64,000 nt of DNA from Penicillus capitatus. Taxonomy: Eukaryota > Plantae > Chlorophyta. The stretch is taken from NCBI GenBank assembly GCA_965649825.1, contig OZ287705.1, positions 310,001 to 374,000 of the forward strand. The letters run 5' to 3'. The notes under the pieces are model-generated. The model searched no databases. It had not been told where the DNA came from and saw only the letters and a program-made list of their open reading frames with translations. The stretch's first letter is position 1; every line of letters starts with the position of its first letter. This document shows, one piece after another, positions 2,155 to 62,589 of the stretch. The translations under genes and the position numbers were made by a program.

Positions 2155-4207
2155 ATGCGGGAGCTTCTCAGACGGCGGCAGAGACGTCGCAAAACACAGA
2201 GATCGGTATCGATCGTGAACAAGTGCCCGCCAGCCCATCGTGGATTCCGCTCTCGATATGTGAATGGCATGCGTATGCAGAATGATGAAGGGGACGGAAG
2301 GGCCTTGAGCAATGGCGCTGTCGTTAGCCATCCGCCACCACTCCGGCGAGCGATATCCTCGAGCGAAGTCATGCCAAGTCCCTTTCGCACAGCGGCAGGA
2401 ATACAAGCCAATCAGATCTTCGCAAAGAGGTCCGTCCACTTGCCCGCCGTTCGCATCCATCTCATAAGCGATGCACCGCGCTGTCGCGACAGGTACCAGA
2501 TTGAGCAGAGTCCTTTTCCAGAAGAGAAACCGAATGCCAGATTCGCGATCGATATGTCGACAGAGAAGCGCGTCTTTCTCAAATTCTGCCCAGACTCCCT
2601 AACCGAATTCGAAAACGCCATCCGAATGCATCGCATTCTGAATGAGAGTCCACATGTCTGCAAGTTGGGCCGACCCTTTCCAAGAGAACATCGCCAGGCG
2701 GTGCCGCAGGTTGTTGGCCAGTGTCAAGGAACGTGGCTTCCCGCCATGCCTCGTATACGAGAGAGGCGATTACACCCTTGCCGAGCGACTCGTCAAAGAT
2801 CCGCCGTCTATGATCCGCCGACAGGCCGTTCTTCATTCGGTACGCCGTACGGAGCTCTCGTCAGGGGGCAAGCATCTTTCGTTCTGTAGACTCTCGAGGC
2901 GTTAGAGAACATCCATAGGCACGATGTGACGCACGGGCGCTTGGAGCCGGAGAAGATTATGTGGTTTGCGGCTGACTCGTCCTGGAAGCTCATCGATCTG
3001 ACATGCGCCGCCAGTGTCGATGATTGGACATTGGTCAGTGATGTGACAGGTAAGTATGCGGCACCGGAAGTGCAATTCGCTCATCAACACGGACGTCAAC
3101 GCATTCTCATGGAACCGGCGGTCGACATGTGGTCGTTCGGCGTCATCGCGCTCGAAACACTAACAGGTCTGCCTTTCGCGATCGGCAGGGTGAAAAGCGA
3201 TCGGTGTGGATCAGGGAGGACGTTTGTCGATGGGGAGAGCGTGCGGAAAAGCGTCGCCGACTTCGTCTGGGCTTCGGATTCAGATGCTGCCGAGTACGAG
3301 CACAGATGGCTCTATGCCGATCCCGGCGGGCGACGTTCTGGCAGCGATGAGCAGCGGTACCGTCGCTTTTTGCGCAAGCTGCTCTGCAAGAACACGAAGG
3401 ATAGAGTCACGGCATCCGATGCACTCGGAGACATTCTGTTCCGCAACGTCGAAGTCGAGTTGCAACGCAGCCACGCCTTAGTCCAGGTGCGTCTTCGTCT
3501 CACTCTTATCTAACTCTTTTGATCACGCTTCCTTGCAGAGCTCACACAATGCACTTCAGACGGATCCTTTTCTCAGGTCAGTGATCGGCTCTCAGCTGCG
3601 GGTCGAGACGAAGGTGGAAGTCTTCCCCTGCACAAATCCGTCCAACGTGTCCTTCTACTCGAGAGAAGGCGACCATGCCTACACAGATGACGACGAAGAA
3701 CTGGAGGACAGGACGATTTACGTGCTGCGATACGGAGAGCGCTTTCGTTTGCGTCTGACGATCTCCTATGCCGAAGGCTGTCAGCTTCCGATCGAGGAAA
3801 TCGAATCCATCGTCCTGAAAACGCGCAAGGGCACGATCGTTGATCTACCGTATCGAATCGAGAACAGTAGGGACAGTATGAAGCTTGAAGTCGCTGTCAA
3901 AGTGGATCCGACGATCAGCAACTTGAAAGAGCACTTTGCGATCTGTCCGCTTTGCGGAACAGTCAATGAACGCTACCGAAAGGCGACGGTGCAGCTGAGG
4001 TTTCCTGTGGGAGACGATCCCGATTCGGCGCTGGTCAAGAACTGCGAGATCTATTTTCTGATCGTCCGATCTGGCAGAAAACTGCGCCGTTATCGAATGG
4101 CGCGATCGATGCGACAGCGATGGTCACGGCTGCCGAAACCCGCCAAACAGGCGATCCGTATGATCTATCACGGCGTCTCCAAGGCGGTCGAGTGCGTTCT
4201 GCCATAA
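2155..4207 (+). CDS. Multi-exon protein kinase-like protein (predicted pseudokinase K1) with a C-terminal uncharacterised beta-rich domain
   Basis: Kinase subdomains are spread over ORFs 2155-2889, 2642-2905, 2926-3513 and 3533-4207: RVFLKF, PPCLVYERG, HGRLEPEKIMWF, LIDL, YAAPE, DMWSFGVI, RVTASDAL. Short GT-AG introns join them (e.g. ~2664-2709, ~3487-3538). The start is approximate. Confidence 0.85.
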
Positions 4208-12971: not shown

Positions 12972-12976
12972 GTTTC
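12972..12976 (+). other. Left target-site duplication GTTTC of the TRIM+Gypsy composite
   Basis: gtttc directly precedes tgtgaa at 12977, and the same gtttc follows ttcaca at 22416-22420. Confidence 0.9.
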
Positions 12977-13265
12977 TGTGAACGTCGACCCGAGGGCCGA
13001 GTCCGGACCGGATGGCGAGCCGCGCAGGGAAACTCTGTCGGCAATGGCTATTTACATAGCTAGACAGATACAGCACGGCAGCTCCGTTTAAATACCCCGG
13101 ATTAGGAGGGTCACATCATTACGTAAGGCATATCGTCACACCTCTGTCACACGTCTCGTCCTGCGCTCCAATGATGTTCTGCTGGCGTGGCGCCACAGGG
13201 ACGGTTGGCGCGCCAGCAGCGACTCCTCGACAGATGACTCGAGGCAGAACCAGTGACCCTTCACA
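12977..13265 (-). repeat. TRIM 3' LTR (289 bp)
   Basis: Direct repeat of 13709-13997 with TG..CA ends. Confidence 0.95.
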
Positions 13266-13283
13266 TGGGCGCACCCGCATTCC
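13266..13283 (-). other. TRIM motif at the plus-strand priming (PPT) position: GGAATGCGGGTGCGCCCA
   Basis: These 18 nt are identical to 14626-14643 of the Gypsy and abut the 3' LTR. Confidence 0.75.
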
Positions 13284-13695
13284 TGCTGATGCACACTCCG
13301 AGGCACTCTCGCTTCACCACCCTGCTGCTTCCCCTTGCAGCTCTGACACTGACAGGATGAGCGGCGGCGGACAGCACAGGAGAAAACGCAGCGGAAGTCT
13401 TTGTCTCTCGCTGTCCCGAAGCACAGTCTTCAATCTTCACGCACGGTCTTCGGTCTTCACGTCTCCCGAGGCGGTCAGCGAGTCAGACCTGCCCCCGACG
13501 CGGGGCAGCGCTCAGCGCCAGTCCCTCGGTTACGCACCACTCTGGGTCTCCGCTCAGACCCTGCGCTCGAACCCGCTCAAGCGCAGCGGAAGTCTTGAAA
13601 TGCGGGCAGCGCGGCAGCGGATTCTTGGTGGACGGCGCAGAGGATGAAAACGAAAACGGCGCAGTGAGTCGGTGAAAGCCGCACTCACGTAGGCT

Positions 13696-13708
13696 CGCTC
13701 CGAAACCA
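13696..13708 (-). other. TRIM primer-binding site TGGTTTCGGAGCG
   Basis: Abuts the 5' LTR, starts with TGG, and is identical over 13 nt to the Gypsy PBS. Confidence 0.85.
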
Positions 13709-13997
13709 TGTGAACGTCGACCCGAGGGCCGAGTCCGGACCGGATGGCGAGCCGCGCAGGGAAACTCTGTCGGCAATGGCTATTTACATAGCTAGACAGA
13801 TACAGCACGGCAGCTCCGTTTAAATACCCCGGATTAGGAGGGTCACATCATTACGTAAGGCATATCGTCACACCTCTGTCACACGTCTCGTCCTGCGCTC
13901 CAATGATGTTCTGCTGGCGTGGCGCCACAGGGACGGTTGGCGCGCCAGCAGCGACTCCTCGACAGATGACTCGAGGCAGAACCAGTGACCCTTCACA
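13709..13997 (-). repeat. TRIM 5' LTR (289 bp); TATA-like TATTTAA at 13820-13826 (minus strand)
   Basis: Direct repeat of 12977-13265, followed on the minus strand by the PBS. Confidence 0.95.
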
Positions 13998-13998
13998 T

Positions 13999-14625
13999 TG
14001 TGAAGATTCATCTTTCCCGGCCTTCTTGCCGACCTCCGTCACGATGTCTTCCGCCCTTACTTTGTGGACGGGTGGTGGCGGCACGCTCGGCAGGACCGGG
14101 CCTTCGACGTCTCCGGAATGACTCATTTCACAAGCGCAGCGGAAGTCTTGGAAATAGAAGGAGTGATGAGCGGTTCTTGAGGGGTTAGCGACGTTTTGGG
14201 AAGTTCAGAGGTTGCAGCCAAGAGACAACTTGTTACAACTGAGAAGTAGACAGCGAATGTTTTGACGGATTGTATGTGATTCAGAACACAAGTGCAAACT
14301 TTGATGTTTTTTACGAAAGGTGTTTTTATGTGTCAAAACCTTGCTTAAATACTCCGACCCCGATGTGACGACAGGAAAATCAGCTGAACTTCAAGAGTGA
14401 GTTCGCAATGAGGTTCCCACTGAAACCAGGTAATTCATCATGAACTTCTAGAAGTTTCCTAGGAACTTCTTAGGAACTCACTCCCAGTCACCATTACTTA
14501 TTCGCGACTCAGCAGCGACGGTTACGTCGCACAGCCAAAGACGCGACAAGTGCCAAGTGACAGGAATATCATTATTACAGAGACGTCCCATCACCGTTTT
14601 GTCAGAATTGCGCCATTCTTTCACA
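13999..14625 (-). repeat. Gypsy 3' LTR (627 bp)
   Basis: Direct repeat of 21789-22415 with TGTGAA..TTCACA ends. Confidence 0.97.
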
Positions 14626-14643
14626 TGGGCGCACCCGCATTCC
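14626..14643 (-). other. Gypsy motif at the PPT position (non-polypurine, ends in CCA)
   Basis: The sense strand reads GGAATGCGGGTGCGCCCA|TGTGAA, and the TRIM carries the same motif. Confidence 0.75.
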
Positions 14644-14732
14644 CGTTGCGCAAACTCCGATGTGCGGAGCAAAGAAGAAAACCAGCCCACACAGCCTACC
14701 TAGTTAAAATACTGATGACAGCAGATGGTTCT

Positions 14733-15752
14733 TCAGGCGCGACGGCGTATGAGCGCCCGGGGGTCCGAAACCCCCACCTTCGTTGTCTGCGACTGGTACA
14801 GATTTCCATTTACTCTATCTCGCGTCAGGTCGAAAGGCTGCATTATCTCTCTCCCCAGCCTCGTCTCCACCTTGTCTCCCGCGACGGTGAAATTGCAGAC
14901 TTCCATGTGGGGGCCGATCTTCACCCTCGCGGCGGTGCTGCCCACTATCACGCTTGTGCCGCCTTCACTGCGAATGACACGTCCCTCGATTCCTGGCGGG
15001 AGGGGCCCTTGGAGAGGCTGGACACGGAGTCCAAGCAGTTCCGCAGTCGCTCTGCTGACCACGTGACCCGAGAGCTCGGGGTCAATGAGGAAACGGTGTG
15101 GCAATTTGATCTCCCCGAGCTCCCCTGCGGCAATGTATCGCGGTCCTGGCGGTCGGCAAATGGCGGTGAGGGGCGGTGGGTGGGCTCGCGCTGAGAGGAG
15201 CGGCGATTCCGGAGGGGTAGGGGACGGAGGCCGAGGGGGCAAGGGGCTGCGCATCCTTCGCCGCGAGCCCTCCCCGCGACTTCCGCGGCCGCTCCTGCGC
15301 CGGCTTGTTTCGCCTTGGCTGTTTCCTCCACGTGTGGCTTCGACAGGGGTGCTTCCTCTTGTGGCTGGTGTGCCGGGTCCCTCTGCGCAGCGTCGCTCAA
15401 TCTCGGCTATGAGGTCGGCCAGGGTCAGGGAACGACATTGCTCCCTTACCTCGGCCGCCCTCATTTCCGCCATGCTGCGGTCCGTGGTAGGGGCCAGGTT
15501 GTCTGGTGACGGGGTTGGGGTCACGCGCCTGAGGCAGGTGAGACGGTGCAGGTTTCCCTCTGACGCGGACGAGCTTCTTTCCCTCTTCATGGCTTCGAAA
15601 ATGAGAGCGAAGGCGCCCTCGAGAACTCGGAACGCGACAAAGACGGAAAGGCCAACGACGAATTCCTGGGCTACGGCCGGCCACGATTCAATGAATGTCA
15701 GGAGAGTGAGCGTAAACACGAGCGCAAAAAAGCTGAGTACTGCGAAAGACAT
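14733..15752 (-). CDS. Gypsy ORF3 (339 aa, env position): two N-terminal hydrophobic segments, an Arg/Pro-rich linker and a retropepsin-like domain
   Basis: Hydrophobic aa ~2-21 and ~31-52. The C-terminal FLIDPELSGHVVSRATAELLGLRVQPL...LGREIM aligns with the element's own protease MLVDSGSSVCVMP...GWEIQPL...VGVNAL. Confidence 0.8.
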   Translation of the reverse strand: MSFAVLSFFALVFTLTLLTFIESWPAVAQEFVVGLSVFVAFRVLEGAFALIFEAMKRERSSSASEGNLHRLTCLRRVTPTPSPDNLAPTTDRSMAEMRAAEVREQCRSLTLADLIAEIERRCAEGPGTPATRGSTPVEATRGGNSQGETSRRRSGRGSRGEGSRRRMRSPLPPRPPSPTPPESPLLSARAHPPPLTAICRPPGPRYIAAGELGEIKLPHRFLIDPELSGHVVSRATAELLGLRVQPLQGPLPPGIEGRVIRSEGGTSVIVGSTAARVKIGPHMEVCNFTVAGDKVETRLGREIMQPFDLTRDRVNGNLYQSQTTKVGVSDPRALIRRRA

Positions 15753-16025
15753 GAGCGAGCAAATGGTGAAATCCCGGTGCGGGCGGTCCCTTTATACCCC
15801 CGTAACCTCCGAGGACACGTGCCCAGCGCGCGCCCTGACTGGCGGTTATCCTATGGTTCGCCCAAAGGTCATGGCATCCGTCGGGAGCTTCGCTCCGCTG
15901 GAGGAAGCTATCTTCCAACCATCGGGAGTTTCCCTACGCATTTGGTCATCCGCCGCAAACCGTTATGAACTTTGGAAGACAAGGGTGTATCCGTCAGCAA
16001 CCCGTCGGATTATCTAATGAGTGCG

Positions 16026-18887
16026 TCACATCTGCAGCAGCCGTAGCTGGTGCGAGTGACACGACCGGCGATTCCGCCCATCCAGTGTTTCGACCTCGAT
16101 GATATGCGGAGTGATAACAGCGCGGACGCGCCATCCCGACTCCCACTGGGCCGCTAGCTTATGTGCTGGCCGCGGCACCATGATTGCGACCTTGTCTCCA
16201 ACTCGCAGGTTTCTTCTCGTCGGGATGGTCCGCTCGTGTCTTGCTCTTCGCTTCCGCCGTTGGTCGTCCGAACGCTTCCATGCTCTTCCTTGGACTCTGT
16301 CCAGTTCCTCCTTCTGGAGCCGCGTACCATCGGCTCGTTTGCCCGTCATGACGAGACTCGGAGCGTATCCAAGCGCAGAGTGCCATGATTCGTTATACGC
16401 CTTCTCGATACGTTGGAGGAGTGACGGCCATGGCGCACTTGGGCCTTCTCTTCGGATTCGACCCAGGATGGTGCCAATTGCTCGCTCGGCCATTCCATTG
16501 CTCCAGTGAGCATAGGCAGGAGACAGTGCCATCTTCACGTGGCGCCGGCTGCAATACTCTTCGAAGTCGATGGATACAAAAGCTGCGCCTTGGTCACTTA
16601 CGAGCCGGCGAGGGGGCCCGAAGTGATATATCCATTTACGCAGTCCCGCCTTCGCGGCCTCGGCCGTCGGCCCTGCTGAAGCTGTGAGCATGACGTAGCG
16701 GCTGAATCCGTCTATCATGAGAAACACGTGCACGTTGTCTTCCTCCTTTTCCCAGTGTATGGGTCCGAGAAAATCACAAAAGACCGTGTCGTTTGGGCAG
16801 GGGCAATCCCACGAGCCCCAGACGGGTCGCTGAATGGGTCGTCCGTAGGCCTGACATTGCCTGCATCCTTGGACGAACTGTCGGACATGTGTTCTCATCC
16901 CTGGCCAATCCGCTCCCGTTGCTTTGAGGTTCCTCAGCGTTGTCTGCCAGTTGAAGTGCCCTTCGTGAGCCTTCTTGATCTGCCTCAGCTGGCCTCGTGT
17001 CGGGCCCGCCGTTGCCTGAGACACCTCGGCTGCGCCCTTTCCCTTACGGGGTCTGGATAAGAGGTCCGCGCCTTGGTTTTCTGCCCCGGGAACGAATTCG
17101 ACAATGAAGTTTTCGTTTCCTAGGAGCCATCCCAGTAGGCGCAGTACTCGCTTGTCCTTGAGACTTGGCGTGCTGGTGCTCAGTTGCTCGGCGACCGCTT
17201 GGTTGTCCGTCCGGATGAGCAAAGGAAAGTCCCCTCGCAACGGCTTTGTTGCTTGACAGGCCCACACGATTGCCTTGAGTTCCCCGAGGAAAGATGAAGT
17301 CACTTCCGGCACACTCTTGCTCCCGAGGTCGACGAGGTGCTCGTGGTTTGACCCTTTGGCCCACAGCAGATATCCCGCGTGCTCTCCGGACCAATCCGTC
17401 TCGAGAATGTATTGCGTCGTCCGGAGACCAGGCAGTTCGAGCAATACCTGTCGATCGAGGGCTCGCAGAAGCACCTCCCAGACTTCCCGTCGGGCTCGGT
17501 CCCACCACTTGCCGTCTTGTTTTCTTGCCTTGGCTTCTGCTAGCAGCTGTCGGAGGGGCGCTATCAATCTCTCGAGGTCCACAATGGTTCGCCTCAGATA
17601 GGAGAGCACTCCGATGAGGCGCTCAAGATCTTTCCAGTGCGTCACCTTTCCGAGTTGGGTCCAGCGACTGCGGAAGTAGTCTGTCAGCGTCCACGACCCA
17701 TGCGACAGTTCCATCCCCAGGAACTTGACTTTCGTCAGCAGGAGCTCGGTCTTCGCGAGGTTGACCTTGAGCCCGAACTCCTGGAAGCGAGCAAAGATGC
17801 TGCGGACGCGGTCACAGAGTTCTTCTGGGGTAGTACCACCGACAAGGAGGTCGTCGGCATACTGCACTGCGCCGAGCCCCTGTACAATCTCTGCTACCCG
17901 TTCCGCGAAGAGGATCGGACTCCATGACCATCCCTGCGGCAGGCGCTTCCAGGCGTAACGGCGGTCCTGCCAAGTGAACGCGAATGCAGACTGCAGCTCT
18001 GGGCACACCGGGATGGCGAAGAAACCATCCTTGAGGTCCAGCTTCGCAAAGTACCTCCATGCCGGGTCTACATCCCACAGCCGCCGCCAGACGTCGATCT
18101 GGGTCATTCCATGTTTCTTGAAGTGAGCGTTCAACCAACGAAAGTCGTTGGTGAACCTGTAGCTCCCATCCTTCTTTGGGATGGGGTACAGGGGGCTTAG
18201 AGCCACTCGCTCACCCATGGAGACCTGTCGGAGATAGCCGCGCTGAACATAGTGCTCAAGCTGTTCGGCTATCTTGCGTCGGTCGGCGACCTGCTCTGTC
18301 TTGTATGATGTGCGCAACCCTTGCTCTCTGGGTGGTGTCCAGCAGACTTCGTCGGCTCTGACCTGGAGGGGCTCCATTGCGGGCACGATGGGGTGCCGGC
18401 TTAGGTCGCTGACGTCAGGAAAACGACGCGCTAGCTCGTTTCGCAGGGACTCGGCAAGGGTGTCAACGGCGACTGAGCCGATCTTGGCTAGCCGGACTAC
18501 CTCAATGCTGCTGTGTCCGTGCAAAGAAACGAGGGGCGTGGTCGGAGTGACTCGAATCACTCTTTCTGACGTATTGTAGACCTCACATCGTACCATTCCT
18601 CCAGAGGTTACTACTACTCCAGATAGAACCTCGGGTCGCTGAAAACAGCTAGCTATGGTGACGCCGCCTTCTACTTCTAGCTTCCACGGGAGGTACCAGC
18701 GTTCCCAAGTCCTTGGCGGCAAGAATCTTGGCTTTCCACTTTGCAGCTGGACTCCCTTTGGAGTGACTGAGATTCCCGTTCCGTCCTTGATCTCCCATTG
18801 CTGGTGCACGCGAACAGTGCCGCCCCTCCCGTGGCTTTTGGAGGGGGCAGTTAGTTTGGGTGGTGCGCTGCTTGCACTGCCGCGCAC
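16026..18887 (-). CDS. pol: Gypsy Pol: dUTPase-like remnant, RT, RNase H, integrase with GPY/F-like tail
   Basis: RT motifs: PIPKKDGSYRF, LDLKDGFF, LPQGW, YADD (17850-17861). RNase H: ETD..GELKA..RTDN. Integrase: H-x3-H...CRQC, CDF, SDQG, NGMAE. Confidence 0.95.
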   Translation of the reverse strand: MRGSASSAPPKLTAPSKSHGRGGTVRVHQQWEIKDGTGISVTPKGVQLQSGKPRFLPPRTWERWYLPWKLEVEGGVTIASCFQRPEVLSGVVVTSGGMVRCEVYNTSERVIRVTPTTPLVSLHGHSSIEVVRLAKIGSVAVDTLAESLRNELARRFPDVSDLSRHPIVPAMEPLQVRADEVCWTPPREQGLRTSYKTEQVADRRKIAEQLEHYVQRGYLRQVSMGERVALSPLYPIPKKDGSYRFTNDFRWLNAHFKKHGMTQIDVWRRLWDVDPAWRYFAKLDLKDGFFAIPVCPELQSAFAFTWQDRRYAWKRLPQGWSWSPILFAERVAEIVQGLGAVQYADDLLVGGTTPEELCDRVRSIFARFQEFGLKVNLAKTELLLTKVKFLGMELSHGSWTLTDYFRSRWTQLGKVTHWKDLERLIGVLSYLRRTIVDLERLIAPLRQLLAEAKARKQDGKWWDRARREVWEVLLRALDRQVLLELPGLRTTQYILETDWSGEHAGYLLWAKGSNHEHLVDLGSKSVPEVTSSFLGELKAIVWACQATKPLRGDFPLLIRTDNQAVAEQLSTSTPSLKDKRVLRLLGWLLGNENFIVEFVPGAENQGADLLSRPRKGKGAAEVSQATAGPTRGQLRQIKKAHEGHFNWQTTLRNLKATGADWPGMRTHVRQFVQGCRQCQAYGRPIQRPVWGSWDCPCPNDTVFCDFLGPIHWEKEEDNVHVFLMIDGFSRYVMLTASAGPTAEAAKAGLRKWIYHFGPPRRLVSDQGAAFVSIDFEEYCSRRHVKMALSPAYAHWSNGMAERAIGTILGRIRREGPSAPWPSLLQRIEKAYNESWHSALGYAPSLVMTGKRADGTRLQKEELDRVQGRAWKRSDDQRRKRRARHERTIPTRRNLRVGDKVAIMVPRPAHKLAAQWESGWRVRAVITPHIIEVETLDGRNRRSCHSHQLRLLQM
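18822..18860 (-). promoter_or_regulatory. -1 programmed ribosomal frameshift signal (gag-pro to pol)
   Basis: The heptamer C-CCA-AAC (18860-18854) lies in the ORF1 frame just before TAA. After a 5-nt spacer comes a GC-rich hairpin (18848-18822). Pol is in the -1 frame. Confidence 0.85.
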
Positions 18888-21800
18888 ATAACCGAGCGCC
18901 CGTCCGGGGCCACGAGTCGGTTTCCCGCGAAATCCAAACTCCAGCCGAAATCTCGCAGAGCGTTTACGCCAACGATTGGGTGTTCAGGCCCGTCCACCAC
19001 GAGAAACGGCACTTGTCTTGTCTCTCCGCCAATGTCCACTGGGAGGCCCACTCGGCCTCGAACCTGGGTTGTCACACCGTTGAATGCTTGGACTTCCATG
19101 GGCTCAGGGAGGGGCTGTATCTCCCAACCACCTTGTATGCAGCGTTCCGTGGGCATCACGCACACGGAGGAGCCCGAATCCACGAGCATCTGGACTGGAC
19201 TAGCCCCCTCAGCCAGCTTGGCGCGTACGTAGTAGAGACGCGATGGGTCACTACTTGTGGCGGCGTCCCATACCGCTGCCACTGGTGGCCTGTCGCTTGG
19301 TCCCTCGTCGGGCGCTCGTTGCTGTTCTTCCGGGACGTGCACCACTTGCTGCCAGAAGTGTGGGCATTCTCCGGTTGCGTGATCTCGGGCGTTGCAGTTT
19401 GCGCAACGTCTTGGTGGCGGAAGCCGCGAGGCCTGCATAGCCGGTACGGCGGGCCTACCCATTCGTGGCGTCCTTGATGGTCCGGGAGAGGGAGGTCTGG
19501 GCATTGTCGGCCTGATCATGGGCGGGGGCTGTCCTCTTGCGGCGGCTGCCTGTCGTTCTTCTACGCGATGGAGTCGATCCAGTATGCTTTCGATACTCCC
19601 TAGGCCTTGGAGAACGACAGGATGCGGGGCCTGCGGGAGCTCGTCGGCTTCTCCGTCACTGGCTGGTCGGTCTTCCCATGCGACGAAAGGCCTAGCAGCT
19701 TGCTGTGGCTGTCCTTCGTCCGAGTTGTATCCCGTTCCCCTGCCTCCGCGCCCTCGACCGCGTCCTCGGCGCCCTTGATTTCTCCCACGTCCTTGGTGGC
19801 TTCTTCCTTGACCTCTTCCTTCGCGGGTTCCTCGCGGGACGGTGGGGGAGGGGGCCGCTGGTGGTGCCGGTGGCGGTGCTGTCATGTTGGCTTCCTGACG
19901 TGGTGCCGCTGGAGGTGCTGGCGGCGGTGCCACGTTGGCTTCCTGACGGGGTGCCGCATTTTGTTGTGCTGGCTGCGTCGCTGGCTGCTGTCCGCTTCGC
20001 TGTTGTTCCCTCTGCTGGTTTTGATGAGCGGCAGCTGTCCGAGCCCTGCGAGGTCTTTGCGGTGGCGGCACCGGGATTGGTTGTGTTCGCTGTTGCGAGA
20101 CGAAGCTTCCGATAAAGAGCAGTGGCTGGACAACGAGCCAGTAAGCGACCCAAAAAGGGAAGTAAAGGACCGCAGCAGTGCCCCACGTCAGGCTGTAAAT
20201 ACTGCGCATGGTGTCCTGTCCGAGATCGACGACCGAGTGAACTCCGTCGGCGATCCTCTTGACCACGGTGGCGACCAGAGCTAACGTCATGAGGATTCCT
20301 ACCAAGGCCAGCACGAGCAGGATCAGTCCGAGGTTTTGATTGCTTCCGGCGGCCCTAACGCTGAGGAGGGCCTGGAGGCCGTCGACCATGTTCGGACTTA
20401 TGACGAACCGAAGCAGACCCACCGCCCAGTGCGCTGGGCTCACGACAAACCCATACCATCCTGCAGCCCATGCGCCCCACGTTCTTGTAGGTGGCGCCTG
20501 GACCGAGCGAGTAAAGGTGGCTATCATATCTGCGCTTGCCGCAAGCTTCCTGGTTTGCTCAAGAACGGTTGGCATGAGTTCTCGGACTGCCCCCAGCTCA
20601 CCCTGCAGTTGCCCCTTGATTGCGTTCACGCCGTCTTGTGCTGCCCTAGCGATGGCTCGGTCGATGACTTGGAGTACTTCCCATCCTTTTTCGTCAGCTT
20701 CGTCCGTCATTTGTCGAGCCATTTGTAGGATGCTGAGATTGATCTGGTTGACGGCGCGGGTCGTCCCCGTGAGGAAGGACGTGGTTCCAGCCTCAGCTGA
20801 CGACGGGGGTGCCAATGTAAACTTGTGGTGCCAGGCTGAGCCGGTAACCCGTCGCCGGTGCATTCTCGTCAGGGCTTGCTCATAGTGTTCTTTCAGCTTG
20901 TCCATCTGTTCCCTGGCGAGCTGTCCGCGTCGTTCGGCCTTCTCTCCCCAACGCCTGGAGAATTCGAGGGCGTCGTTGGCTATGTCCACCAGTGATCGAT
21001 TCTGATACATACGCGGGCTCACTCCCAGGTATCCAGCATAAATTTCCTTGGCGGCTTCCTGGAACGCGGCGTGTAGGACCTTTTCGTCTAGGTCGAAGAT
21101 GAGCGGTTGACACTCTGTGCGCCAGCCATACAATGTGGGCATCCAGGTCTTTACCAGTCGCTCGCCCAGGGGGCAATTCGCGAGGTCTTCGACTTTAGTT
21201 GCGAACGCAGAGAACTGGCGCTCAATGCGTTCCTCCATCGTATATGGCATGCCGAACATCCGGATGGCTGCCACATGCATGACTGGAAAGAGGCATAGGT
21301 ATACGAAAAAGGTAATCCACAGAATCGTGCTTGTCTTTCGCCGTCCCCGGGGCCTTGGGTTGTCTCCTTCGGAGGGACCTTCGTCAGGTCGCTCTGGCAG
21401 CTCATCCCTCCCGAGGTCTTGCAGCGCGTTGTATGCTTTCGTGGCGTTTTCCGACAGCCACTTCCCCAAGCGTGCGAACCAGTCATACTTGTAAGCGCAT
21501 GTGAGGAGGACGACTAGTGCAATGAATGCCGCGGTACGCAGGGTGCTGCCCCAAGCCCAATCCCAGAAGATGCCGAAGACGCAGAGAATGGTAGCGCCAA
21601 TAGCAAGCTCTTCCACACGAGGGCCTCTCCCTTCGGGTACGGGTGATGGTCTGGCCCGAGGTCGTGGATGCGGGCCGTGCTCCAGCGCTCTTCGACGGGC
21701 TTCTTCGGCGAGTCGTTGCTGCTCTGGGTCGGCTAGAATCTCTGAAGCGGTTCTCTGAACGTCGCGACTCGACCCCGCTCCGAAACCATGTGAAGATTCA

Positions 21801-21916
21801 TCTTTCCCGGCCTTCTTGCCGACCTCCGTCACGATGTCTTCCGCCCTTACTTTGTGGACGGGTGGTGGCGGCACGCTCGGCAGGACCGGGCCTTCGACGT
21901 CTCCGGAATGACTCAT
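18851..21916 (-). CDS. gag: Gypsy ORF1 (1021 aa): multi-TM Gag-like protein, CCHC zinc knuckle and aspartic protease
   Basis: CANCNARDHATGEC (CX2CX4HX4C) and LVDSG are present, with several long hydrophobic segments in the N-terminal ~610 aa. The ATG lies inside the 5' LTR. Confidence 0.9.
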   Translation of the reverse strand: MSHSGDVEGPVLPSVPPPPVHKVRAEDIVTEVGKKAGKDESSHGFGAGSSRDVQRTASEILADPEQQRLAEEARRRALEHGPHPRPRARPSPVPEGRGPRVEELAIGATILCVFGIFWDWAWGSTLRTAAFIALVVLLTCAYKYDWFARLGKWLSENATKAYNALQDLGRDELPERPDEGPSEGDNPRPRGRRKTSTILWITFFVYLCLFPVMHVAAIRMFGMPYTMEERIERQFSAFATKVEDLANCPLGERLVKTWMPTLYGWRTECQPLIFDLDEKVLHAAFQEAAKEIYAGYLGVSPRMYQNRSLVDIANDALEFSRRWGEKAERRGQLAREQMDKLKEHYEQALTRMHRRRVTGSAWHHKFTLAPPSSAEAGTTSFLTGTTRAVNQINLSILQMARQMTDEADEKGWEVLQVIDRAIARAAQDGVNAIKGQLQGELGAVRELMPTVLEQTRKLAASADMIATFTRSVQAPPTRTWGAWAAGWYGFVVSPAHWAVGLLRFVISPNMVDGLQALLSVRAAGSNQNLGLILLVLALVGILMTLALVATVVKRIADGVHSVVDLGQDTMRSIYSLTWGTAAVLYFPFWVAYWLVVQPLLFIGSFVSQQRTQPIPVPPPQRPRRARTAAAHQNQQREQQRSGQQPATQPAQQNAAPRQEANVAPPPAPPAAPRQEANMTAPPPAPPAAPSPTVPRGTREGRGQGRSHQGRGRNQGRRGRGRGRGGRGTGYNSDEGQPQQAARPFVAWEDRPASDGEADELPQAPHPVVLQGLGSIESILDRLHRVEERQAAAARGQPPPMIRPTMPRPPSPGPSRTPRMGRPAVPAMQASRLPPPRRCANCNARDHATGECPHFWQQVVHVPEEQQRAPDEGPSDRPPVAAVWDAATSSDPSRLYYVRAKLAEGASPVQMLVDSGSSVCVMPTERCIQGGWEIQPLPEPMEVQAFNGVTTQVRGRVGLPVDIGGETRQVPFLVVDGPEHPIVGVNALRDFGWSLDFAGNRLVAPDGRSVMCAAVQAAHHPN
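21776..21788 (-). other. Gypsy primer-binding site TGGTTTCGGAGCG (degenerate tRNA-iMet type)
   Basis: Abuts the 5' LTR and matches 10 of 12 positions of the plant-type iMet PBS TGGTATCAGAGC (recalled; the host tRNA is not in this window). Confidence 0.8.
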
Positions 21917-22415
21917 TTCACAAGCGCAGCGGAAGTCTTGGAAATAGAAGGAGTGATGAGCGGTTCTTGAGGGGTTAGCGACGTTTTGGGAAGTTCAGAG
22001 GTTGCAGCCAAGAGACAACTTGTTACAACTGAGAAGTAGACAGCGAATGTTTTGACGGATTGTATGTGATTCAGAACACAAGTGCAAACTTTGATGTTTT
22101 TTACGAAAGGTGTTTTTATGTGTCAAAACCTTGCTTAAATACTCCGACCCCGATGTGACGACAGGAAAATCAGCTGAACTTCAAGAGTGAGTTCGCAATG
22201 AGGTTCCCACTGAAACCAGGTAATTCATCATGAACTTCTAGAAGTTTCCTAGGAACTTCTTAGGAACTCACTCCCAGTCACCATTACTTATTCGCGACTC
22301 AGCAGCGACGGTTACGTCGCACAGCCAAAGACGCGACAAGTGCCAAGTGACAGGAATATCATTATTACAGAGACGTCCCATCACCGTTTTGTCAGAATTG
22401 CGCCATTCTTTCACA
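21789..22415 (-). repeat. Gypsy 5' LTR; TATTTAA at 22135-22141 and a 3-unit HSE-like motif at 22235-22249
   Basis: Direct repeat of 13999-14625, followed on the minus strand by the PBS. Confidence 0.97.
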
Positions 22416-22420
22416 GTTTC
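22416..22420 (+). other. Right target-site duplication GTTTC
   Basis: Matches 12972-12976. Confidence 0.9.
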
Positions 22421-33087: not shown

Positions 33088-33552
33088 GGTGGTAATCACG
33101 AAATGAAATGCCATTTTATGGGATAATCACGAAAGTGCCTTGGGTAATCACGAAATGAAATGCCATTTTTTGGGATAATCACGAAAGTGCCTTGGGTAAT
33201 CACGAAATGAAATGCCATTTTTGTTTTTTCTTTTTTTTTTTTTTTGTTTTTTCTTTTTTTTCTTTTTTGATTTTTTGGGGTAATCACGAAATGAAATGCC
33301 ATTTTTTGGGGTAATCACGAAATGAAATGCCATTCCTTGGGGTGGTAATCACGAAATGAAATGCCATTCCTTGGGGTGGTAATCACGAAATGAAATGCCA
33401 TTCCTTGGGGTGGTAATCACGAAATGAAATGCCATTCCTTGGGGTGGTAATCACGAAATGAAATGCCATTCCTTGGGGTGGTAATCACGAAATGAAATGC
33501 CATTCCTTGGGGTGGTAATCACGAAATGAAATGCCATTTTGGGGTAATCACG
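33088..33552. repeat. 34-bp minisatellite (ggtaatcacgaaatgaaatgccattccttggggt), about 7 near-perfect units plus variant units and a T-rich insert
   Basis: The 34-nt period is readable from 33311 onward. Variant units occupy 33088-33310. Confidence 0.95.
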
Positions 33553-34125
33553 AGGATGTCCTTCCTTCCGGGATTCCTCAACCAGGTCGAAGGGAAGGCC
33601 GCCTACAAGGGACGACCCTCACCCCGCCTTCGGGACTAACGGGTGGGCCCGACGCCGTAGAAGCCGCTCAACAGTCCGCGCCACAACCGTCGCACGATTG
33701 CCGCCATCGACGGCAGCGTCTCATGCGCTGTGTGAAAGGTTCTTTATCGACGGACAACCGAACGACGAGTTCGACGTAGTGGGACCGGAGCTGCGCAACT
33801 GTGGGGGAGTATCTCCCGGAAAGAAGGGCCATCCGAGGATGTCCCCCCAATCCGAGATTCCTCAACCAGGTCGAAGCAAAGGCCGCCTACAGGAGACGAC
33901 CCTCACCCCGCCTTCGGGACTAACGGGTGGGCCCGACGCCGCAGAAGCCGCTCAACGGCCCCCGCCACAACCGCCGCACGATTGCCGCCGTTCTCGGCAG
34001 CGTCTCATGCGCTGTGGTAAGGTCTTCGATAGTACAATACTTCAATATGACGGACAACCGAACGACGCGTTCGACGCATCCGGACTGGAGCTGCGCAACT
34101 ACGGGGGAGTATCTCCCGGAAAGAA
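33552..34125. repeat. Two diverged ~283-bp tandem units (starting at 33552 and 33835)
   Basis: Both units share gaggatgtcc...gattcctcaaccaggtcgaag...cttcgggactaacgggtgggcccgacgcc...gggggagtatctcccggaaagaa. Confidence 0.9.
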
Positions 34126-36836: not shown

Positions 36837-39107
36837 ATGGCCTTTGGTCAGTTAGACATGCGAGCGTCGTTGGTGGAAGACGAGAATCTCGGGAGAAATT
36901 CGACCGCGTGTCGTTCGGCGCCGAGTCTGGACGATTCGGAAGACATGTGGTTTGAAGGTCTGCATCCAGTCTACAGCGACGAATCCGAGGTCACACAATA
37001 CGTCAGCGTCAACTCTCACTTCAGTAAGATCCAGATTCGAGCGTGGCAGCAATGATGAATGACGCGTTGTCCTTAGCCAACGATGAATCCTTCGAGTCGC
37101 CGAAGACCGAGACACAGAAGGTCCATTCCGCTGTGGATGTCGAACAGGTGCGCCCGTGCTATGTGCCTTCAGTCTTCAGACTGTGTGTGCGTGGAGCGTG
37201 CCAAATGGAACGGCGAGGCGTCGAAAGCATCTATGGAGCCCGGTCGATCACCACCAATCTGTCAGCACGTTCGGTCAAACGCATCACGGGCTGCCGTGTT
37301 GGCCGACCTATACGAAGGACAGATCTTTGCAAGAAAGTCCGCTCAAATGTGCCATAAGGGAGAGGCCGCGAGTTGCTGTGTCCTGCAGGTATGTGATCGA
37401 AAGTGCTCCGCTCGTGGAGACACCGAACAGTCGTTGCGCCGTCAACGCGATCACCGGAGAATGTGTCTACCTCCAATTCTTTCCAGACATGCAGAACGAG
37501 TTTGAAAACTGCATCAGAATGCACAACGCACTGTCAGAGAGCCAATTCATTTGCCGGTACTCAACGACGCACTCTCCGGTGGACGACTGTCGCACGAAAG
37601 CTGCGTCGCAGGTTGCTCGAAGTCATCACAGACGAACGCCACTATCCCCCGTGCTTGATACTGGAGAGAGGCGACTACACTCTACTGGAGAGACTGAGGA
37701 AGGATCCGCCATCCATGATCCGCCGTCTGGCCGTTCTCTATGCGGTGAGGCGACGCCATTCCGTTCTGATCTGGCCTGATCGACCTTTCCGCAGATCCTC
37801 GAGGCGCTGGAAGATGTCCACGATCTCGGCGTGACGCACGGGCGCCTGGAGCCTGCGAACGTCATGTGGTTCTCGGCCGACTGCACCTGGAAGCTGATCG
37901 ACCTGAAGTGCGCCTCGATGGCCGGAGACTGGACGGTGGTGGACGCTGCCGTTGGTAAGTACTCGGCTCCCGAGATCCGCTACGCCGAGCGAGTGGATCG
38001 GCAGCGCGTCCACCTGGATCCTCCGGCCGACATGTGGTCTTTCGGCGTCATCGCCCTGGAGACACTGACGGGTACGCCATTCACTCTCGTTCTGCGAGTC
38101 CATATTTGGCGGCCTTGTCCAGGGAGGACCTTTCTGGATGCCAGCTGTGTCCAGAAGTGCATCGTCGACGACGTCTGGGCCTCCAATCTGGACGCCGATG
38201 ACAACGACAGGTGGCTCTTCGCCGATCCAGGCGGTCGACACGGGGGCAGCGACGAGCAGAGGTACTACAGATTCGTTCGGAAGCTCCTCTGCAGGAGCCC
38301 GAAGCACCGAAGCACGGCGACGGATGCACTCGGAGACGTCCTGTTCCGAAACGTAGAAGACGCCGGCCAGCGAAGCGACTCCCTCGTCCAGGTGCGCCCT
38401 ATCTCACTACTGATCTCGCCCTTCTCCACCATCTTTCTCTGTAGAGATCCCACAACGCTCTTCACACGGATCCCTTTCTCCTGGCGGTGATCGGTGCGCA
38501 GCTGCGGGTGGACGTCAAGGTGGAGGTCCTTTCGGACAGTGGTCTGTCCGACGAGCCGTTTCACTCGAGGGAAGCATACCGTGCCTACACAGAAGATGAC
38601 GAAGATCTCGGCGACGCGATTATCTACATACTGAGATTCCGGGAGCGCTTTCGGCTGCGCCTAACCATCTCATACGCCGAAGGCTGTCAGCTTCCGATCC
38701 AGGAAATCGAATCCGTCTCCATAAAGACCAGCGAAGACGAGATCGTTGCCCTGGAGTTCCACACCGTGTACGCCGACAGCGATCGGTTGGAGACTGCCGT
38801 CCTCGTGGATCCGAGAGCGTTCGGGGGGCACTTTGCCGTCTGCCCGATGTACGGAACGGTGAATAAGCGCTACAGGAGGTCGACGCTGCAGGTGGCGTTC
38901 CGCATAGGCGACGACTCGAACGCCGTCGTGGCGAAGAACTTCGATCTCCACTTCCTCATCGTGGGATCCCACAGGAGACTGCGCCGCTACCGACTGGCGA
39001 GAACGATTCGGCAGCAGTGGTCGCTGCTGCCGAAGCCGGCCAAAAGGGCGGTCCGTCTGGTCTGTCATGGCGTCTGGAAGGCGGCGGAATGCGTCATGCC
39101 GTGCTGA
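36837..39107 (+). CDS. Multi-exon predicted pseudokinase K4, the closest paralogue of K1, with the recurrent C-terminal domain
   Basis: Motifs CVYLQF, PPCLILERG, HGRLEPANVMWF, LIDL, YSAPE, DMWSFGVIALETLT and DPGGRHGGSDEQRY. The domain lies in ORF 38487-39107. The start is approximate. Confidence 0.85.
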
Positions 39108-57504: not shown

Positions 57505-58639
57505 TTGGCGGAGGCAGACAACCACGAAGGTTCACGATGTCGGATACACAATGAACGTAAATGTCTCGTGAATCTCGCAGAACTGCCAACGACAGGCGCC
57601 GCGCAAAGCGTAGTGAGACGAAGTGCCTCGTTGGACGACGATATTCGAACGACCGAAGCTCTGGCGGGCGATACCTCTCTCCTGAACAATGTTGCGCGGA
57701 ACGCAGTTTCGACCTTTAGAGAAGCAAACAGTGCGTTCCTTCTCGCTTCGCAAGTCCACACTTCATTGGTTGCGTCCCCTTTAGCTCATGGATATGCCAT
57801 TGACGCGGACGCGGTTCAGTCACCGCCTCAAGGAAATGCGGTACGACTCCAGAGGCCCCTTATGATCATTCCCTCTAATATGAAAGCATTTTTAGGCTTC
57901 TTCTGGAGGCGGATCGTCAACAGGACGTCCATTCACTCAGATCATCGCGAATGAGGTTGTCAAGATTGTTCTCGATCCCAGTCTACACCTCTTCACGAAA
58001 GACAGCAATCACGAGGACGACTTCTGCAAGAGAAAGGCAAGAGAGGCTTGCCGGCTGAATGATCGAAACTTCCCCGGCGCCTACGTATGTCGAACAAATA
58101 TCGGCGACATTGGAAGACTCGTTCTGCATTATCGCATACATAGCTGTCAGACGCCAAGAGACTGTCAGATACCGGAATGCTGCGACATCCCTTTGCGAGC
58201 TACTGGCGTGGCGATTAAGATCAATAGACATCCTTGGCAGAACTCACTGGAGTTCGAACAAGGTCTGAACTCAGAGAATCGGCGGGTAATCGTGGCGCAT
58301 CTTACCAAAGACGCTTTCGGAGTCGAAGACATGCGCACGCCCTCGCGTAGACGTAGAGGCAATCTGTCAGAAAAGTATGTCCATATACGCGTCAGGGTCG
58401 ATTTTGGCATCGGCGAAGGAGAGTCGTGTGTCGGGACAACAGTAGAAACCGAGATGCGCTGCAGAGTCTGCTGCGGAGATTTTTTGAGATTGGGCAGACG
58501 ACTCGTCTCAGGAATGCATGTCCGTCTGCCACAAGTAGCGAGAGACGTCGCCACGTATGTCGATGAAAAGACGCGTGCCATCTGGCGATTGCCAAAGAAT
58601 GTGATCAGGTGGCGTCCCCGACGGGAGGAGGCATCGTGA
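57505..58639 (+). CDS. Stand-alone recurrent-domain gene, duplication copy 1
   Basis: An N-terminal exon (TEALAGDTS..) is followed by an open frame from the acceptor at ~57941: LFTKDSNHEDDF..CQIPECCDIP..KYVHIRV..MRCRV. Confidence 0.7.
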
Positions 58640-58800
58640 GCGTGCCCCGGAGGAGTGACCGCGCTCACAGCTAGACTTCGGTGTGAGACCATCTCATCCA
58701 ATACATCACTCTTTATCTGCCAAAGTGTGACCCGAAACGCCGAAGACCGTTCGGACAGGCACTCCACCTTATCGTACGGAATGGTATTTCGATCGCCGTG

Positions 58801-59270
58801 TCACTCCGGCGAAGAACATCCATCATGAGTTCCGGTACGGCGACTGTCGAATGATGAGCGTGATATCTCTTTGCCGTGGATATAAATCTTGAGTGGATCT
58901 GACGCGTGACACGAGTACAAGAGCACAAGACCATTTTTTCTGCGATCAAATAGATCCCCATATGAAAGATTTGATGACACGCAATGAAACACCTGCTGTT
59001 GCAAGTTCACTCTCCTGATCGGTGGGTGGACTCTTCCATGTATTGTGTACACACTTTCTTGAAAGCTGTCCCATGCACAGTAGATGTTATTGTTCAGCAA
59101 GCTCAGTCTATGAAGCTTGTTTGATTGAAAGTCGATACCTGTTGTCGTTGAGAAGCACGTTGCTCTGTTTAAGCCTTTGCATCTGAAATTGAGGCGTTTG
59201 GCAATGCACTGCCTCGTTCCAACCTTGCCACGCCGATATCCTTCTTCAACGGGGGCAGAACGAAATTAAC
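58801..59270 (-). CDS. Hypothetical protein, 3' exon (duplication copy 1)
   Basis: Open frame of ~150 codons ending CSSPE*. The paralogue at 62105-62589 ends at the same position (CGSSQE*). Confidence 0.4.
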
Positions 59271-60734
59271 GATAGAATGAGGTGTGGTCTTCTTTGTAAA
59301 CAAAAAGATTTCATAGCTGCTGCAAATGACAACGCTTAATTGGTACGCACCTCTATAGCCTCATCTACCTCGGCACTTCAGTTCTCTCTCTTGCGGATCA
59401 TCTTGCCGAAGGAAACGATTTCTGCAAAGTGTGAGATCTCTTGATGCAGAACAACCAGATTCGAGACGTGTATTGCTCATAGCGTTTACAGGACAGACAG
59501 ATATGACAGCTTATGACATTTGCAAGGTTTTCGTTTAATAATTGAGTTGTGCATCTAGGCCCTGATAGTAATCACAAACTGACCAAACCAAAACACAGAA
59601 AATCGCGGTTGCTAAATAGCATGAATGCGATGTCGTTCATAGACAATCATGGGAATGGCGGAGAACATACATGCATTGGGATTCATATGCACGCACGAAT
59701 CCACAGCGCCTAGAGCTAGTATCCAACGTGTCGATCGCACATTCACTGCCTCGTCGTCGTTCATGGACAGTAAAGCTATAAGCAGAACGGATCCTGCTTC
59801 AAACTAGATCAAACATGGTGGAAAGAAAAACAAGGAGGAGGATCGTGTTAGCAAGTGTCGTGTATCTTTGTTGTTACCGTTCAGACACTGCCAGTGAACC
59901 CTAACCGCTGAACGAGGTGTTCGATCGCACTGCCCCTGTCATTCCTTGCCGATGTTGCCAGTCCTCCTGTCTCAGATCCCGGCCACATCTTCTCATTCAT
60001 GACAAGCTATGTGTTCAAGGAGTCAAATAGACAGATCAGCTAACGCAGAGACAACAGAAGGTTTCCTTTCTCGGCATTCAACACAGACGCATACGTTGCT
60101 CTGCAGTTGGCACTTGATGTTTGGAGCTCATGACCTGCCATGAATCAGATCGCCGAGAGGTAAGCTGAAACCGTGACCATTCAAACCCCGTTTCAGCGAT
60201 TTTCAATAGCAGCCGGATCGACGTCTGGCGGCCTCTCTGAGATGCGCGTGTCACATCGGTGTAAAGCGTCCACGACCTTCAGCGCAACACGTTTGTTTTT
60301 CTTTCAGAGCTGATAGCTTCGGAAGTACGCTCTGTTCACAAAGCGCCGTACTAAAGAGATATGCAGAATGCCGTCGACATCTCTTCTGGCGTTTTCTTAC
60401 TGTGTCGGAACGGCGTCTGTTCTCGACTGTAACAAACGCCTGTTCAGCATCACCTTCACCCATAGTAAGAAGAATAGCTGATGGATGAGCTGTTCTTTAC
60501 GTAATTTTTCCCTGCCGTATATATTGCGTAGAAACGCATTGTCAAAGCACAAAACGACTAAGCGCTCAAGTTTCCGACAAGTAATTTCAGTGTTGTGTGT
60601 CAAGCGTCACGGCAGTGACAAACTCTGTCTAGAATCGCCGACTGTTACCATGCACCATCTTCGCAACAACGTTCGTTGTTTCTCGGGATGTCTGCATTTT
60701 CGTCGCTCGACGTCATCCCCACACCGTTTGCCAT

Positions 60735-61965
60735 TTGAATACGTCCGCCCTTCGTCTAGCTGCGTTTTGTTATGCAGAAGACGACAGCAGTTCCCCGGAC
60801 GTATCAGCAGACGCGGAGGCACAGCACCACGACGGTTCAAGAAGTCAGGCAGACGATGAACGCGGAAGTCTTATGAGTGTTACCGAATCGGCAACGTCAG
60901 GCACTTCGCAAAGTGTTGGAAGAAGAAGTCGCCCTTCCGAACACGACAGTCCATTGACGACCGAAGCTCTGACGGGCGATACCTCTGCCGCCAACAGCGA
61001 TGCGCAGAACGCCGCTTCGACGTTTGCTGAAGGCAGTGCGTTCGAGCACGCCTCTCAACTTCACACTTCGTGGTTTGTCTCTTCTAGCTCATGGACATGA
61101 CAACGAATGGGACACGGTCCAGTCACATCGCCAGGGAAATACAGTACGATTCCAGACGTCATCGATGCCGCTAACACAAGTGCCTGATTAGATTTCTTCT
61201 GGCGGAGGATCGTCGGGAGGAAGTCACATCCCTCAGAGGATCGTGGAGAGATTTGTCGAGATCGTTCTCTGTCTTGCTGTAGAGCTCTTCACGAAAGATA
61301 GCAACCAGGAGGATGACTTCTGGAAGAGAGCTTCACGAAAGGCGAACTCGTGGCCAGAGAGAAGCGCACCCGGTGTCTACGTCTATGACATGAATATCGG
61401 CGAAACCGGAAGACTCGTCGTGAATTGCCGCATAAAAGGGTGTCGTGCGCCCGGCGGCTGTCAGATACCAGAATGCTGCAACATTCCATTGAGGGCCAAA
61501 GGCGTGGCAGTCAAGGTCGATGGGCATCCTTGGCACGATCTACAGGAGTTCAAACAAGGCTTGAACACGGAGAATCCGCGGGAGATCGTGGCGCATCTGA
61601 CCGAAGACGCTTTCAGAGTCGACGCCATGCAGGAGGCATCTCGCAGACATGGAGATACTCTGTCGAATAAGTACGTCCGCATCGGCGTCAAGGTTATCTT
61701 CGATGTCGAGAATGCGCCACATATCAAGAAAGAGACAGAGACGGAGATGTACTGCAGAGTCTGCTACGGGAGTGTCCAAAGATTCGTCGGACAGACAATC
61801 GCAGGACTGCACGCTCGCATGCCACAGTTCGCGAGAGACATGACCACATATCTCGAGCACGCGACGCTTGGCGTTTGGAGCATCCCGCGTAGAGTGCTAG
61901 TCTGGCGTCCCCGAAGGAGGAGTGCTGGTGGGCGCACGCGGAGGAGTGATCGCACCCACAGCTAG
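60735..61965 (+). CDS. Stand-alone recurrent-domain gene, duplication copy 2 (possibly frameshifted in exon 1)
   Basis: ORF 61243-61965 reads LFTKDSNQEDDF..CQIPECCNIP..KYVRIGV..MYCRV. There is a 2-nt deletion relative to copy 1 near 61070-61084. Confidence 0.65.
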
Positions 61966-62104
61966 ACTTCAGTGTGAGACCATCCCATCCAATAGCTCAC
62001 TCTTTATCCGCCAAAGTGTGACCCGAAACGCCATGGGACCCTTCGGGCTAGCACTCCAGTCTGTCATGCAGAGTGATAACTGCATGGTGTTTCCGATAGC
62101 TGTG

Positions 62105-62589
62105 TCACTCCTGGGAAGAACCACATGAGTTCTGTTTTCTCACGGCGACTTTCGAAAGCTGATCGCGATATCTCGTTGACGTGGGATTGAATGACTTGAG
62201 TGTATCTAACTCGCGATTCGTGTACAGTACCCCTTTTCTGCGATCAGATAGATCTCCGTATTGCAAGATTTTATTACACGTGCAATGAAACATCTTTTGT
62301 CGAAAACGCAAATTCACGTCCAATCTGCGAATCGGTGACCTCTTTCATGTATATTGTCTATACGCTTTAGTATCCTGGCAACTGTTCTGTGTACAGAAGA
62401 TGTCCCGTTCAGCAAGCCCATTCTATAAACCTTGTTTGATTTATTTCGGCTCGTCATGTCGAATCCGACTCTTCTGTCTAAGTCTTTACGTGTAAAATTG
62501 AAGTGTTTGGCAATGCGCTGCCATTTTACAACGTCGCCATCTCGACATCCTTCTTCGATGAGATGCAGATCGAAACCAATGAAGGACAC
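62105..62589 (-). CDS. Hypothetical protein paralogous to 58801-59270 (split between two frames)
   Basis: Shared peptides EEG.R.G.V...Q.IAK..NF, LLN, FHC and YGDL.DRRK. Confidence 0.35.

Follow-up and report, generated by a model that had tools for sequence, protein, structure and literature searches.

Two complete retrotransposons with long terminal repeats (LTRs), belonging to different families, lie end to end within a single target-site duplication (TSD) in the green alga Penicillus capitatus. They are contained in a stretch of 64,000 nucleotides (contig OZ287705.1, positions 310,001 to 374,000 of the forward strand, GenBank assembly GCA_965649825.1), the whole of which is here called the window and numbered from its first base. 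One is a Ty3/Gypsy element of 8,417 bp; the other is a non-coding element of 1,021 bp, similar to the terminal-repeat retrotransposons in miniature (TRIMs). With one intervening base, they fill the 9,439 bp between two copies of gtttc. The sequence shows a single insertion event, with one outer end contributed by each element. It was probably generated by a single integrase-mediated insertion of a 9,439-bp DNA, made of a full Gypsy complementary DNA (cDNA) and a full TRIM cDNA.

The layout of the insertion was established by reading the sequence and by self-comparison of the window. The coordinates, reported in Table 1, agree with those proposed in a previous annotation, made from the sequence alone (the initial annotation), for the TRIM, the t at 13998, the Gypsy element and the gtttc pair. 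No mismatches are found between the two 289-bp LTRs of the TRIM, nor between the two 627-bp LTRs of the Gypsy element, and all four LTRs start with TGTGAA and end with TTCACA. The coding strand is the minus strand; on this sense strand both elements have the same orientation, head to tail, in the order Gypsy, A, TRIM. The junction reads ...CTTCACA-A-TGTGAAGG..., i.e. a complete U5 end, a single A and a complete U3 end, with no homology. The five bases flanking the TRIM alone (gtttc and ttgtg) do not match, and neither do those flanking the Gypsy element alone (cacat and gtttc), so that each element is without a TSD of its own. The arrangement differs from a nested insertion, as both elements are complete, abut end to end and lack individual TSDs. 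It corresponds to end joining of the type found at 2-LTR junctions, where a U5 end meets a U3 end with few extra bases and no homology.

The corresponding empty site is present in the same assembly. The window lies on contig ctg340041_12x_l of ENA assembly ERZ25074695, and contig ctg340382_23x_l of this assembly (locus L007), reached through the 90%-identity cluster of a flanking open reading frame (ORF), carries the site with one GTTTC at L007:10984-10988. L007 matches the left flank of the window up to 10988 and the right flank from 10984, and 91 of 91 bases at the site are equal to the window flanks joined via a single GTTTC. The two sequences are collinear over 20.6 kb, at 96-98% identity, and no piece of either TRIM or Gypsy is found in L007. 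Because L007 has a single GTTTC, the 9,439 bp represent a single insertion with exact limits, and gtttc is a true TSD; an empty site with one gtttc had been predicted by the initial annotation, which described the two elements as a single unit under one TSD. The probability of a 5-bp match by chance (p about 0.001) is of little weight once the empty site has been found. The 100% identity within each LTR pair indicates a recent insertion and compatible ages for TRIM and Gypsy.

Close relatives of the Gypsy element, obtained by a protein search with its ORF2, are all located in ERZ25074695. Two Gypsy copies are ordinary insertions, with a 5-bp TSD flush with the TG...CA ends (tgcac in L002, whose LTRs are 99% identical to those of the window, and gcacc in L003), and an ordinary TRIM copy with the same features is found in L009 (TSD gcggc). 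Since the latter carries its own TSD, the TRIM is an independent mobile family. A different structure is found at L008:5830-7166 (ctg340479_41x_l), where a Gypsy-type LTR, the primer-binding site (PBS), a TRIM interior and a TRIM LTR follow each other on the sense strand within a single TSD, gctac; the two LTRs differ and the breakpoint falls precisely at the LTR/PBS border. Judging from its sequence, L008 is a second, independent insertion, bounded by a Gypsy LTR on one side and by a TRIM LTR on the other; its mixed ends under one TSD imply that pairing of Gypsy and TRIM ends happened at least twice. The structure fits a second (plus-strand) transfer between molecules at the PBS common to both families; alternatively, a composite similar to that of the window could have undergone a deletion from one of its 19-nt PBS blocks to the other. 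Under either origin, this would be a second pairing of Gypsy and TRIM ends by integrase.

At L010:9832-11551 (ctg337004_11x_l) three identical LTRs alternate with two identical TRIM interiors (LTR-interior-LTR-interior-LTR) within one TSD, gtcgc, a tandem which could be produced by either template switching or unequal exchange. Altogether, five of the six TSDs, including that of the window, have the form GNNNC, and all six end with C (binomial p about 1e-5, given the base composition of the window). Because the TSDs fit GNNNC, one integrase preference would account for ordinary, mixed and composite insertions. The reciprocal mixed element, a TRIM LTR followed by a Gypsy interior, was not found among full-length ORF1 proteins, ten out of ten of which start in Gypsy-type LTR sequence.

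Exact-word comparison of TRIM and Gypsy identified four common blocks. TTCACATGGTTTCGGAGCG (19 nt) includes the LTR end and the PBS; GGAATGCGGGTGCGCCCATGTGAA (24 nt) spans the border of the 3' LTR; CAAGACTTCCGCTGCGCTTG (20 nt) is located in the Gypsy LTR, just before the ATG of ORF1, and in the TRIM leader; the last block (15 nt) is a second copy, within the TRIM, of the core of the CAAGACTTCCGCTGCGCTTG motif. Immediately 3' of the 5' LTR, on the sense strand, both elements carry TGGTTTCGGAGCG, the putative PBS, and immediately before the 3' LTR both carry GGAATGCGGGTGCGCCCA, which is in the position expected for a polypurine tract and has only 11 purines out of 18. No tRNA fitting the PBS was identified by tRNA scans of the window and of six loci. 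The bodies of the two LTR types are unrelated, as the initial annotation had maintained: the best local alignment score is 20, against 18.7 +/- 2.2 for shuffled sequences, and only the terminal TGTGAA...TTCACA is common. The 19-nt, 24-nt and 20-nt blocks, together with these termini, are the cis-sequences expected of a TRIM dependent on the Gypsy family, and the Gypsy element appears to be the helper of the TRIM. The parasite-helper pairing proposed in the initial annotation is consistent with the PBS and 3' LTR-border blocks common to the two elements, with their termini, with the GNNNC-type target preference and with L008.

The CAAGACTTCCGCTGCGCTTG motif is a candidate cis signal, e.g. a putative packaging signal. 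Its core is exactly conserved in the diverged LTR of L003, and is not found in the Gypsy-type LTR of L008. The 19-nt TTCACATGGTTTCGGAGCG was also found in four metagenome contigs (L011:3244, L012:647, L013:7486 and L014:5225), which have nothing else in common with the elements; the flanks of L011 match those of L013. These matches may be due to chance, or to unrelated LTR elements using the same primer.

The larger element carries three ORFs, all open, with ORF1 and ORF2 in different frames of the minus strand. ORF1 corresponds to gag and protease (gag-PR), with a Pfam aspartic protease domain at its end, and ORF2 to reverse transcriptase, RNase H and integrase (RT-RNaseH-IN), with Pfam matches to RVT_1 (236-394), RNase H (462-584), Integrase_H2C2 (636-681) and rve (697-792). 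The resulting order, protease, RT, RNase H, integrase, is that of Ty3/Gypsy elements, and so are the direct LTRs with TG...CA ends and the short TSD observed in ordinary copies. The ATG of ORF1, at 21916, lies 128 nt within the 5' LTR, and the frame runs through the PBS; the N-terminus encoded by the LTR (MSHSGDVEGP...) is found in ten full-length copies of the family. Within ORF1, two imperfect 48-nt tandem copies, 77% identical, are located at 19857-19952. ORF3, downstream of the integrase, has no Pfam match and shows two hydrophobic stretches close to its N-terminus; L002 and L003 match its residues 21-339 at 100% identity, even though the LTRs of L003 are only about 81% identical to those of the window. 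More distant pol relatives (P0017-P0041, about 45% identity, from ENA assemblies) have a dUTPase domain, which the Gypsy element of the window does not have.

In the smaller element a single ORF is present, in antisense orientation, and it matches no Pfam family. With 1,021 bp, short LTRs and a 443-bp interior devoid of coding capacity, it has the general features of a TRIM. Classic TRIMs are shorter than 540 bp, and "TRIM-like" is the safer term, given the larger size. Using the antisense ORF as a search handle, further relatives were found (P0090, P0091 and P0093), of which P0091 may represent an allele of L008. The TRIM LTR of the window is 86.5-88% identical to the TRIM LTRs of L008, L009 and L010. 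Its interior is 98% identical to that of L009, but the LTR only 87.5%; the interior of L008 is 98.7% identical to that of L010, and in P0090 and P0093 a TRIM-like interior is paired with a different LTR end. By these comparisons, TRIM copies are mosaics, in which LTR and interior modules have been reshuffled.

The proposed mechanism starts from two separate reverse-transcription products, a Gypsy cDNA and a cDNA of the dependent TRIM family. At a GTTTC target, integrase would have acted on the Gypsy 5' LTR through its U3 end and on the TRIM 3' LTR through its U5 end, while the inner ends, Gypsy U5 and TRIM U3, would have been linked in head-to-tail fashion, with no homology between them and a single additional A:T pair at the join. 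The outcome would resemble the junction of a 2-LTR circle, formed however between two different molecules; as in these circles, the inner junction is of the kind seen when linear cDNA ends are joined non-homologously. We infer that cDNAs were the substrates, that the integrase was the family's own, and the manner in which the inner ends were joined. Joining could have been carried out by host end-joining, followed by integration of the dimer; by host end-joining of the free ends, after concerted integration of two donors; or by an end-to-end template jump of reverse transcriptase within the particle.

Some points weigh against this explanation, or against parts of it. The three routes would yield the same sequence. 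Of the proposal made in the initial annotation, that two cDNAs were end-joined and then integrated by using one end from each, the use of one end from each stands, whereas the order may equally have been the reverse. The same annotation took the extra A for the mark of an unprocessed cDNA end, on the ground that A precedes the 3' LTR. This is true of every copy inspected, but the A is weak evidence, as it is expected in one case out of four by chance and non-templated addition explains it equally well. The junction at 13998 comes from one contig of one mixed assembly, and the ORF spanning it is a singleton cluster in the protein collection. A homology search with this ORF, an ORF-based survey of low sensitivity, returned no second junction between a Gypsy LTR and a TRIM LTR: the only matches were ORFs running from a Gypsy LTR into the host flank, plus the L008 unit. 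Exact look-ups of Gypsy ORF2, of the TRIM antisense ORF and of two flanking ORFs returned only the contig of the window itself. The six family loci were all reached via ORF-based look-ups in one assembly, and their frequencies are not to be read as estimates.

Among the other explanations considered, one is a variant of the preferred one and concerns the joining step only. Within a virus-like particle holding both RNAs, reverse transcriptase, having completed one cDNA strand, would add a non-templated A and jump onto the end of the other cDNA, making the composite a product of replication and not of host repair. A is the base most often added by reverse transcriptases without a template. The reshuffling of LTR and interior modules between TRIM copies is in agreement with such a step, and so are two products best explained by events between templates: L008, which is the expected product of an intermolecular plus-strand transfer at the shared PBS (as in HIV, PMC5651808), and the three-LTR tandem of L010 under one TSD, as in the template-switching model of PMC1950507. 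An end-to-end jump between finished double-stranded cDNAs is not, however, an established step in vivo, its junction would look identical to that left by host end-joining, and both supporting loci have other possible origins, L010 in unequal exchange and L008 in a PBS-to-PBS deletion of a composite. We regard joining inside the particle as rather unlikely. In the initial annotation the insertion was presented as direct evidence of co-packaging, which is too strong for the window alone, since the two cDNAs could also meet and be joined outside a particle; co-packaging is suggested mainly by L008, which fits it better and has in turn the alternative origin described above. It may also be that Gypsy and TRIM are routinely reverse-transcribed in one particle, with integrase complexes assembling on the ends of two cDNAs and mixed products, such as those of the window, L008 and L010, arising regularly; this is a tentative idea, against which we would lean only slightly.

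An assembly chimera, connecting at 13998 reads from two loci or strains, could be suspected because the assembly is mixed, its contigs bearing labels from 8x to 41x (12x for that of the window). It is nevertheless very unlikely. Sequence common to both sides of the join amounts to about 6 bp, much less than an overlap or an error in the assembly graph would require; a mis-join of two loci, moreover, would give neither matching gtttc on the outer flanks nor flanks that run parallel to one empty site for 20.6 kb and diverge from it to a similar degree left and right. As L007 contains neither element, the empty site alone would leave room for two steps on the haplotype of the window, either as independent insertions at one spot, in either order, followed by a small deletion, or as a break exactly on the border of the first element, into which the second cDNA was captured by end joining. 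A second integrase event would leave a 5-bp TSD of its own, and none is present; no single contiguous deletion converts CACA-gtttc-TGTG to CACA-t-TGTG; a later break would have to hit one particular phosphodiester bond, and its repair would have to spare every base on the flank side; within either LTR pair, finally, there are zero differences. Two steps are on these grounds highly improbable, and sequential insertion followed by deletion was rejected, as the junction is not reproduced by any contiguous deletion and inner TSDs are missing. Retrotransposition of a read-through transcript, from a Gypsy-TRIM tandem already existing elsewhere, could be imagined from the common orientation of the elements and from the Gypsy 5' LTR, which could drive a long transcript. 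Reverse transcription, however, uses one set of U3, R and U5 segments to rebuild both outer LTRs, and would be expected to leave them alike or chimeric, whereas here they are intact, unrelated and each identical to its inner partner. The R homology needed for the first strand transfer is also missing, and no second copy of the junction was found in the ORF-based survey. A read-through RNA is scarcely credible and was rejected on LTR structure; the initial annotation had already judged such an origin unfitting, and the lack of R-like homology, with each LTR pair intact and identical, bears this out.

Table 1. Features of the composite insertion, in window coordinates. Strand "-" denotes features read on the sense (minus) strand.
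Feature	Position	Strand	Remarks
Left TSD copy, gtttc	12972..12976	.	single GTTTC at empty site L007:10984-10988
TRIM, complete element, 1,021 bp	12977-13997	-	
TRIM LTR (3' LTR on sense strand), 289 bp, TG...CA	12977..13265	-	100% identical to 13709-13997
TRIM internal region, 443 bp, non-coding	13266..13708	-	
TRIM block before 3' LTR	13266-13283	-	
TRIM copies of shared motif	13578-13597; shorter copy 13387-13401	-	
TRIM PBS	13696-13708	-	
TRIM LTR (5' LTR on sense strand), 289 bp	13709..13997	-	
Junction base: t on + strand, A on sense strand	13998	.	between Gypsy U5 end and TRIM U3 end
Gypsy, complete element, 8,417 bp	13999-22415	-	
Gypsy LTR (3' LTR on sense strand), 627 bp, TG...CA	13999..14625	-	100% identical to 21789-22415
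Shared 20-nt motif in Gypsy LTRs	14131-14150 and 21921-21940		
Gypsy internal region	14626..21788	-	
Gypsy block before 3' LTR	14626-14643	-	
Gypsy ORF3, 339 residues	14736-15752	-	
Gypsy ORF2 (RT-RNaseH-integrase)	16029-18887	-	
Gypsy ORF1 (with aspartic protease domain)	18854-21916	-	start inside 5' LTR
Gypsy PBS	21776-21788	-	
Gypsy LTR (5' LTR on sense strand), 627 bp	21789..22415	-	
Right TSD copy, gtttc	22416..22420	.	

Other features were observed in the window, outside the insertion. A tandem array with a 34-bp period, whose inner copies are identical, is located at 33276-33581, and paralogous kinase-like ORFs are found to the left of the insertion. Two pairs of diverged duplicated segments are also present: 2882-3828 and 37787-38734 (72-74% identity, 34.9 kb spacing), and 58073-59989 and 61369-63307 (74-87% identity, about 3.3 kb spacing).

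For most small non-coding LTR elements the helper has only been guessed from sequence similarity. In the window, a dependent element and a coding element are locked in one integration event, which provides physical evidence that one integrase accepted both ends. The presence of L008 and L010 in the same family suggests that mixed products of replication and integration are not rare; they would offer LTR elements a route for swapping LTRs, building tandems and creating new families. Should joining have occurred inside the particle, such scars would also record co-packaging of helper and parasite RNAs; and, if co-reverse-transcription were indeed routine, the family would offer a natural setting for reading co-packaging and in-trans end pairing directly from the scars left in the genome.

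No two-family, four-LTR insertion under one TSD, with its empty site, was found described in the literature searched, which did not cover all journals. Complex LTR-retrotransposon insertions under one TSD have been reported, with three LTRs of which the middle one is shared, and template switching was proposed as their origin (Sabot and Schulman 2007, PMC1950507); tandem TRIMs with the same shared-LTR structure are common in sugar beet, where chimeric TRIMs carrying LTRs of other families have also been described (PMC13570524). Like these complexes, the window has more than one element within a single 5-bp TSD, which implies one integration. Unlike them, with their three LTRs of one family and similar outer LTRs, it has four LTRs from two families, which abut directly with one extra base, and no shared LTR. 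The single TSD is the only one of the three features typical of three-LTR complexes to be found in the window; all three are found in L010.

The inner junction is comparable to those of 2-LTR circles and of the LTR-LTR tandems of Drosophila (McGurk and Barbash 2018, PMC5932611), in that a U5 end and a U3 end are in contact, with few extra bases between them or none. Circles, however, join the ends of one molecule and are extrachromosomal dead ends, whereas the junction of the window joins two elements and is chromosomal, with a TSD. The Drosophila junctions are between members of the same family and were seen in short reads, with neither TSD nor empty site shown, both of which are available for the window.

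Intermolecular second (plus-strand) transfer is known to generate proviruses with discordant LTRs in heterozygous particles of HIV (PMC5651808). L008 resembles them, with its two different LTRs and a breakpoint at the LTR/PBS border. This route explains L008 and not the four LTRs of the window; moreover, the retroviral RNAs are variants of one virus, whereas here a helper and a non-coding dependant are involved. Pairs of helper and dependant, such as BARE-2/BARE-1 and Quinta/Cereba, have been inferred from sequence similarity alone (cited in PMC13570524 and PMC11302176). As in these pairs, the TRIM has retained from its coding partner the PBS, the LTR termini and the sequence adjoining the 3' LTR; unlike in these pairs, the partners in the window are also physically joined, in one insertion event.

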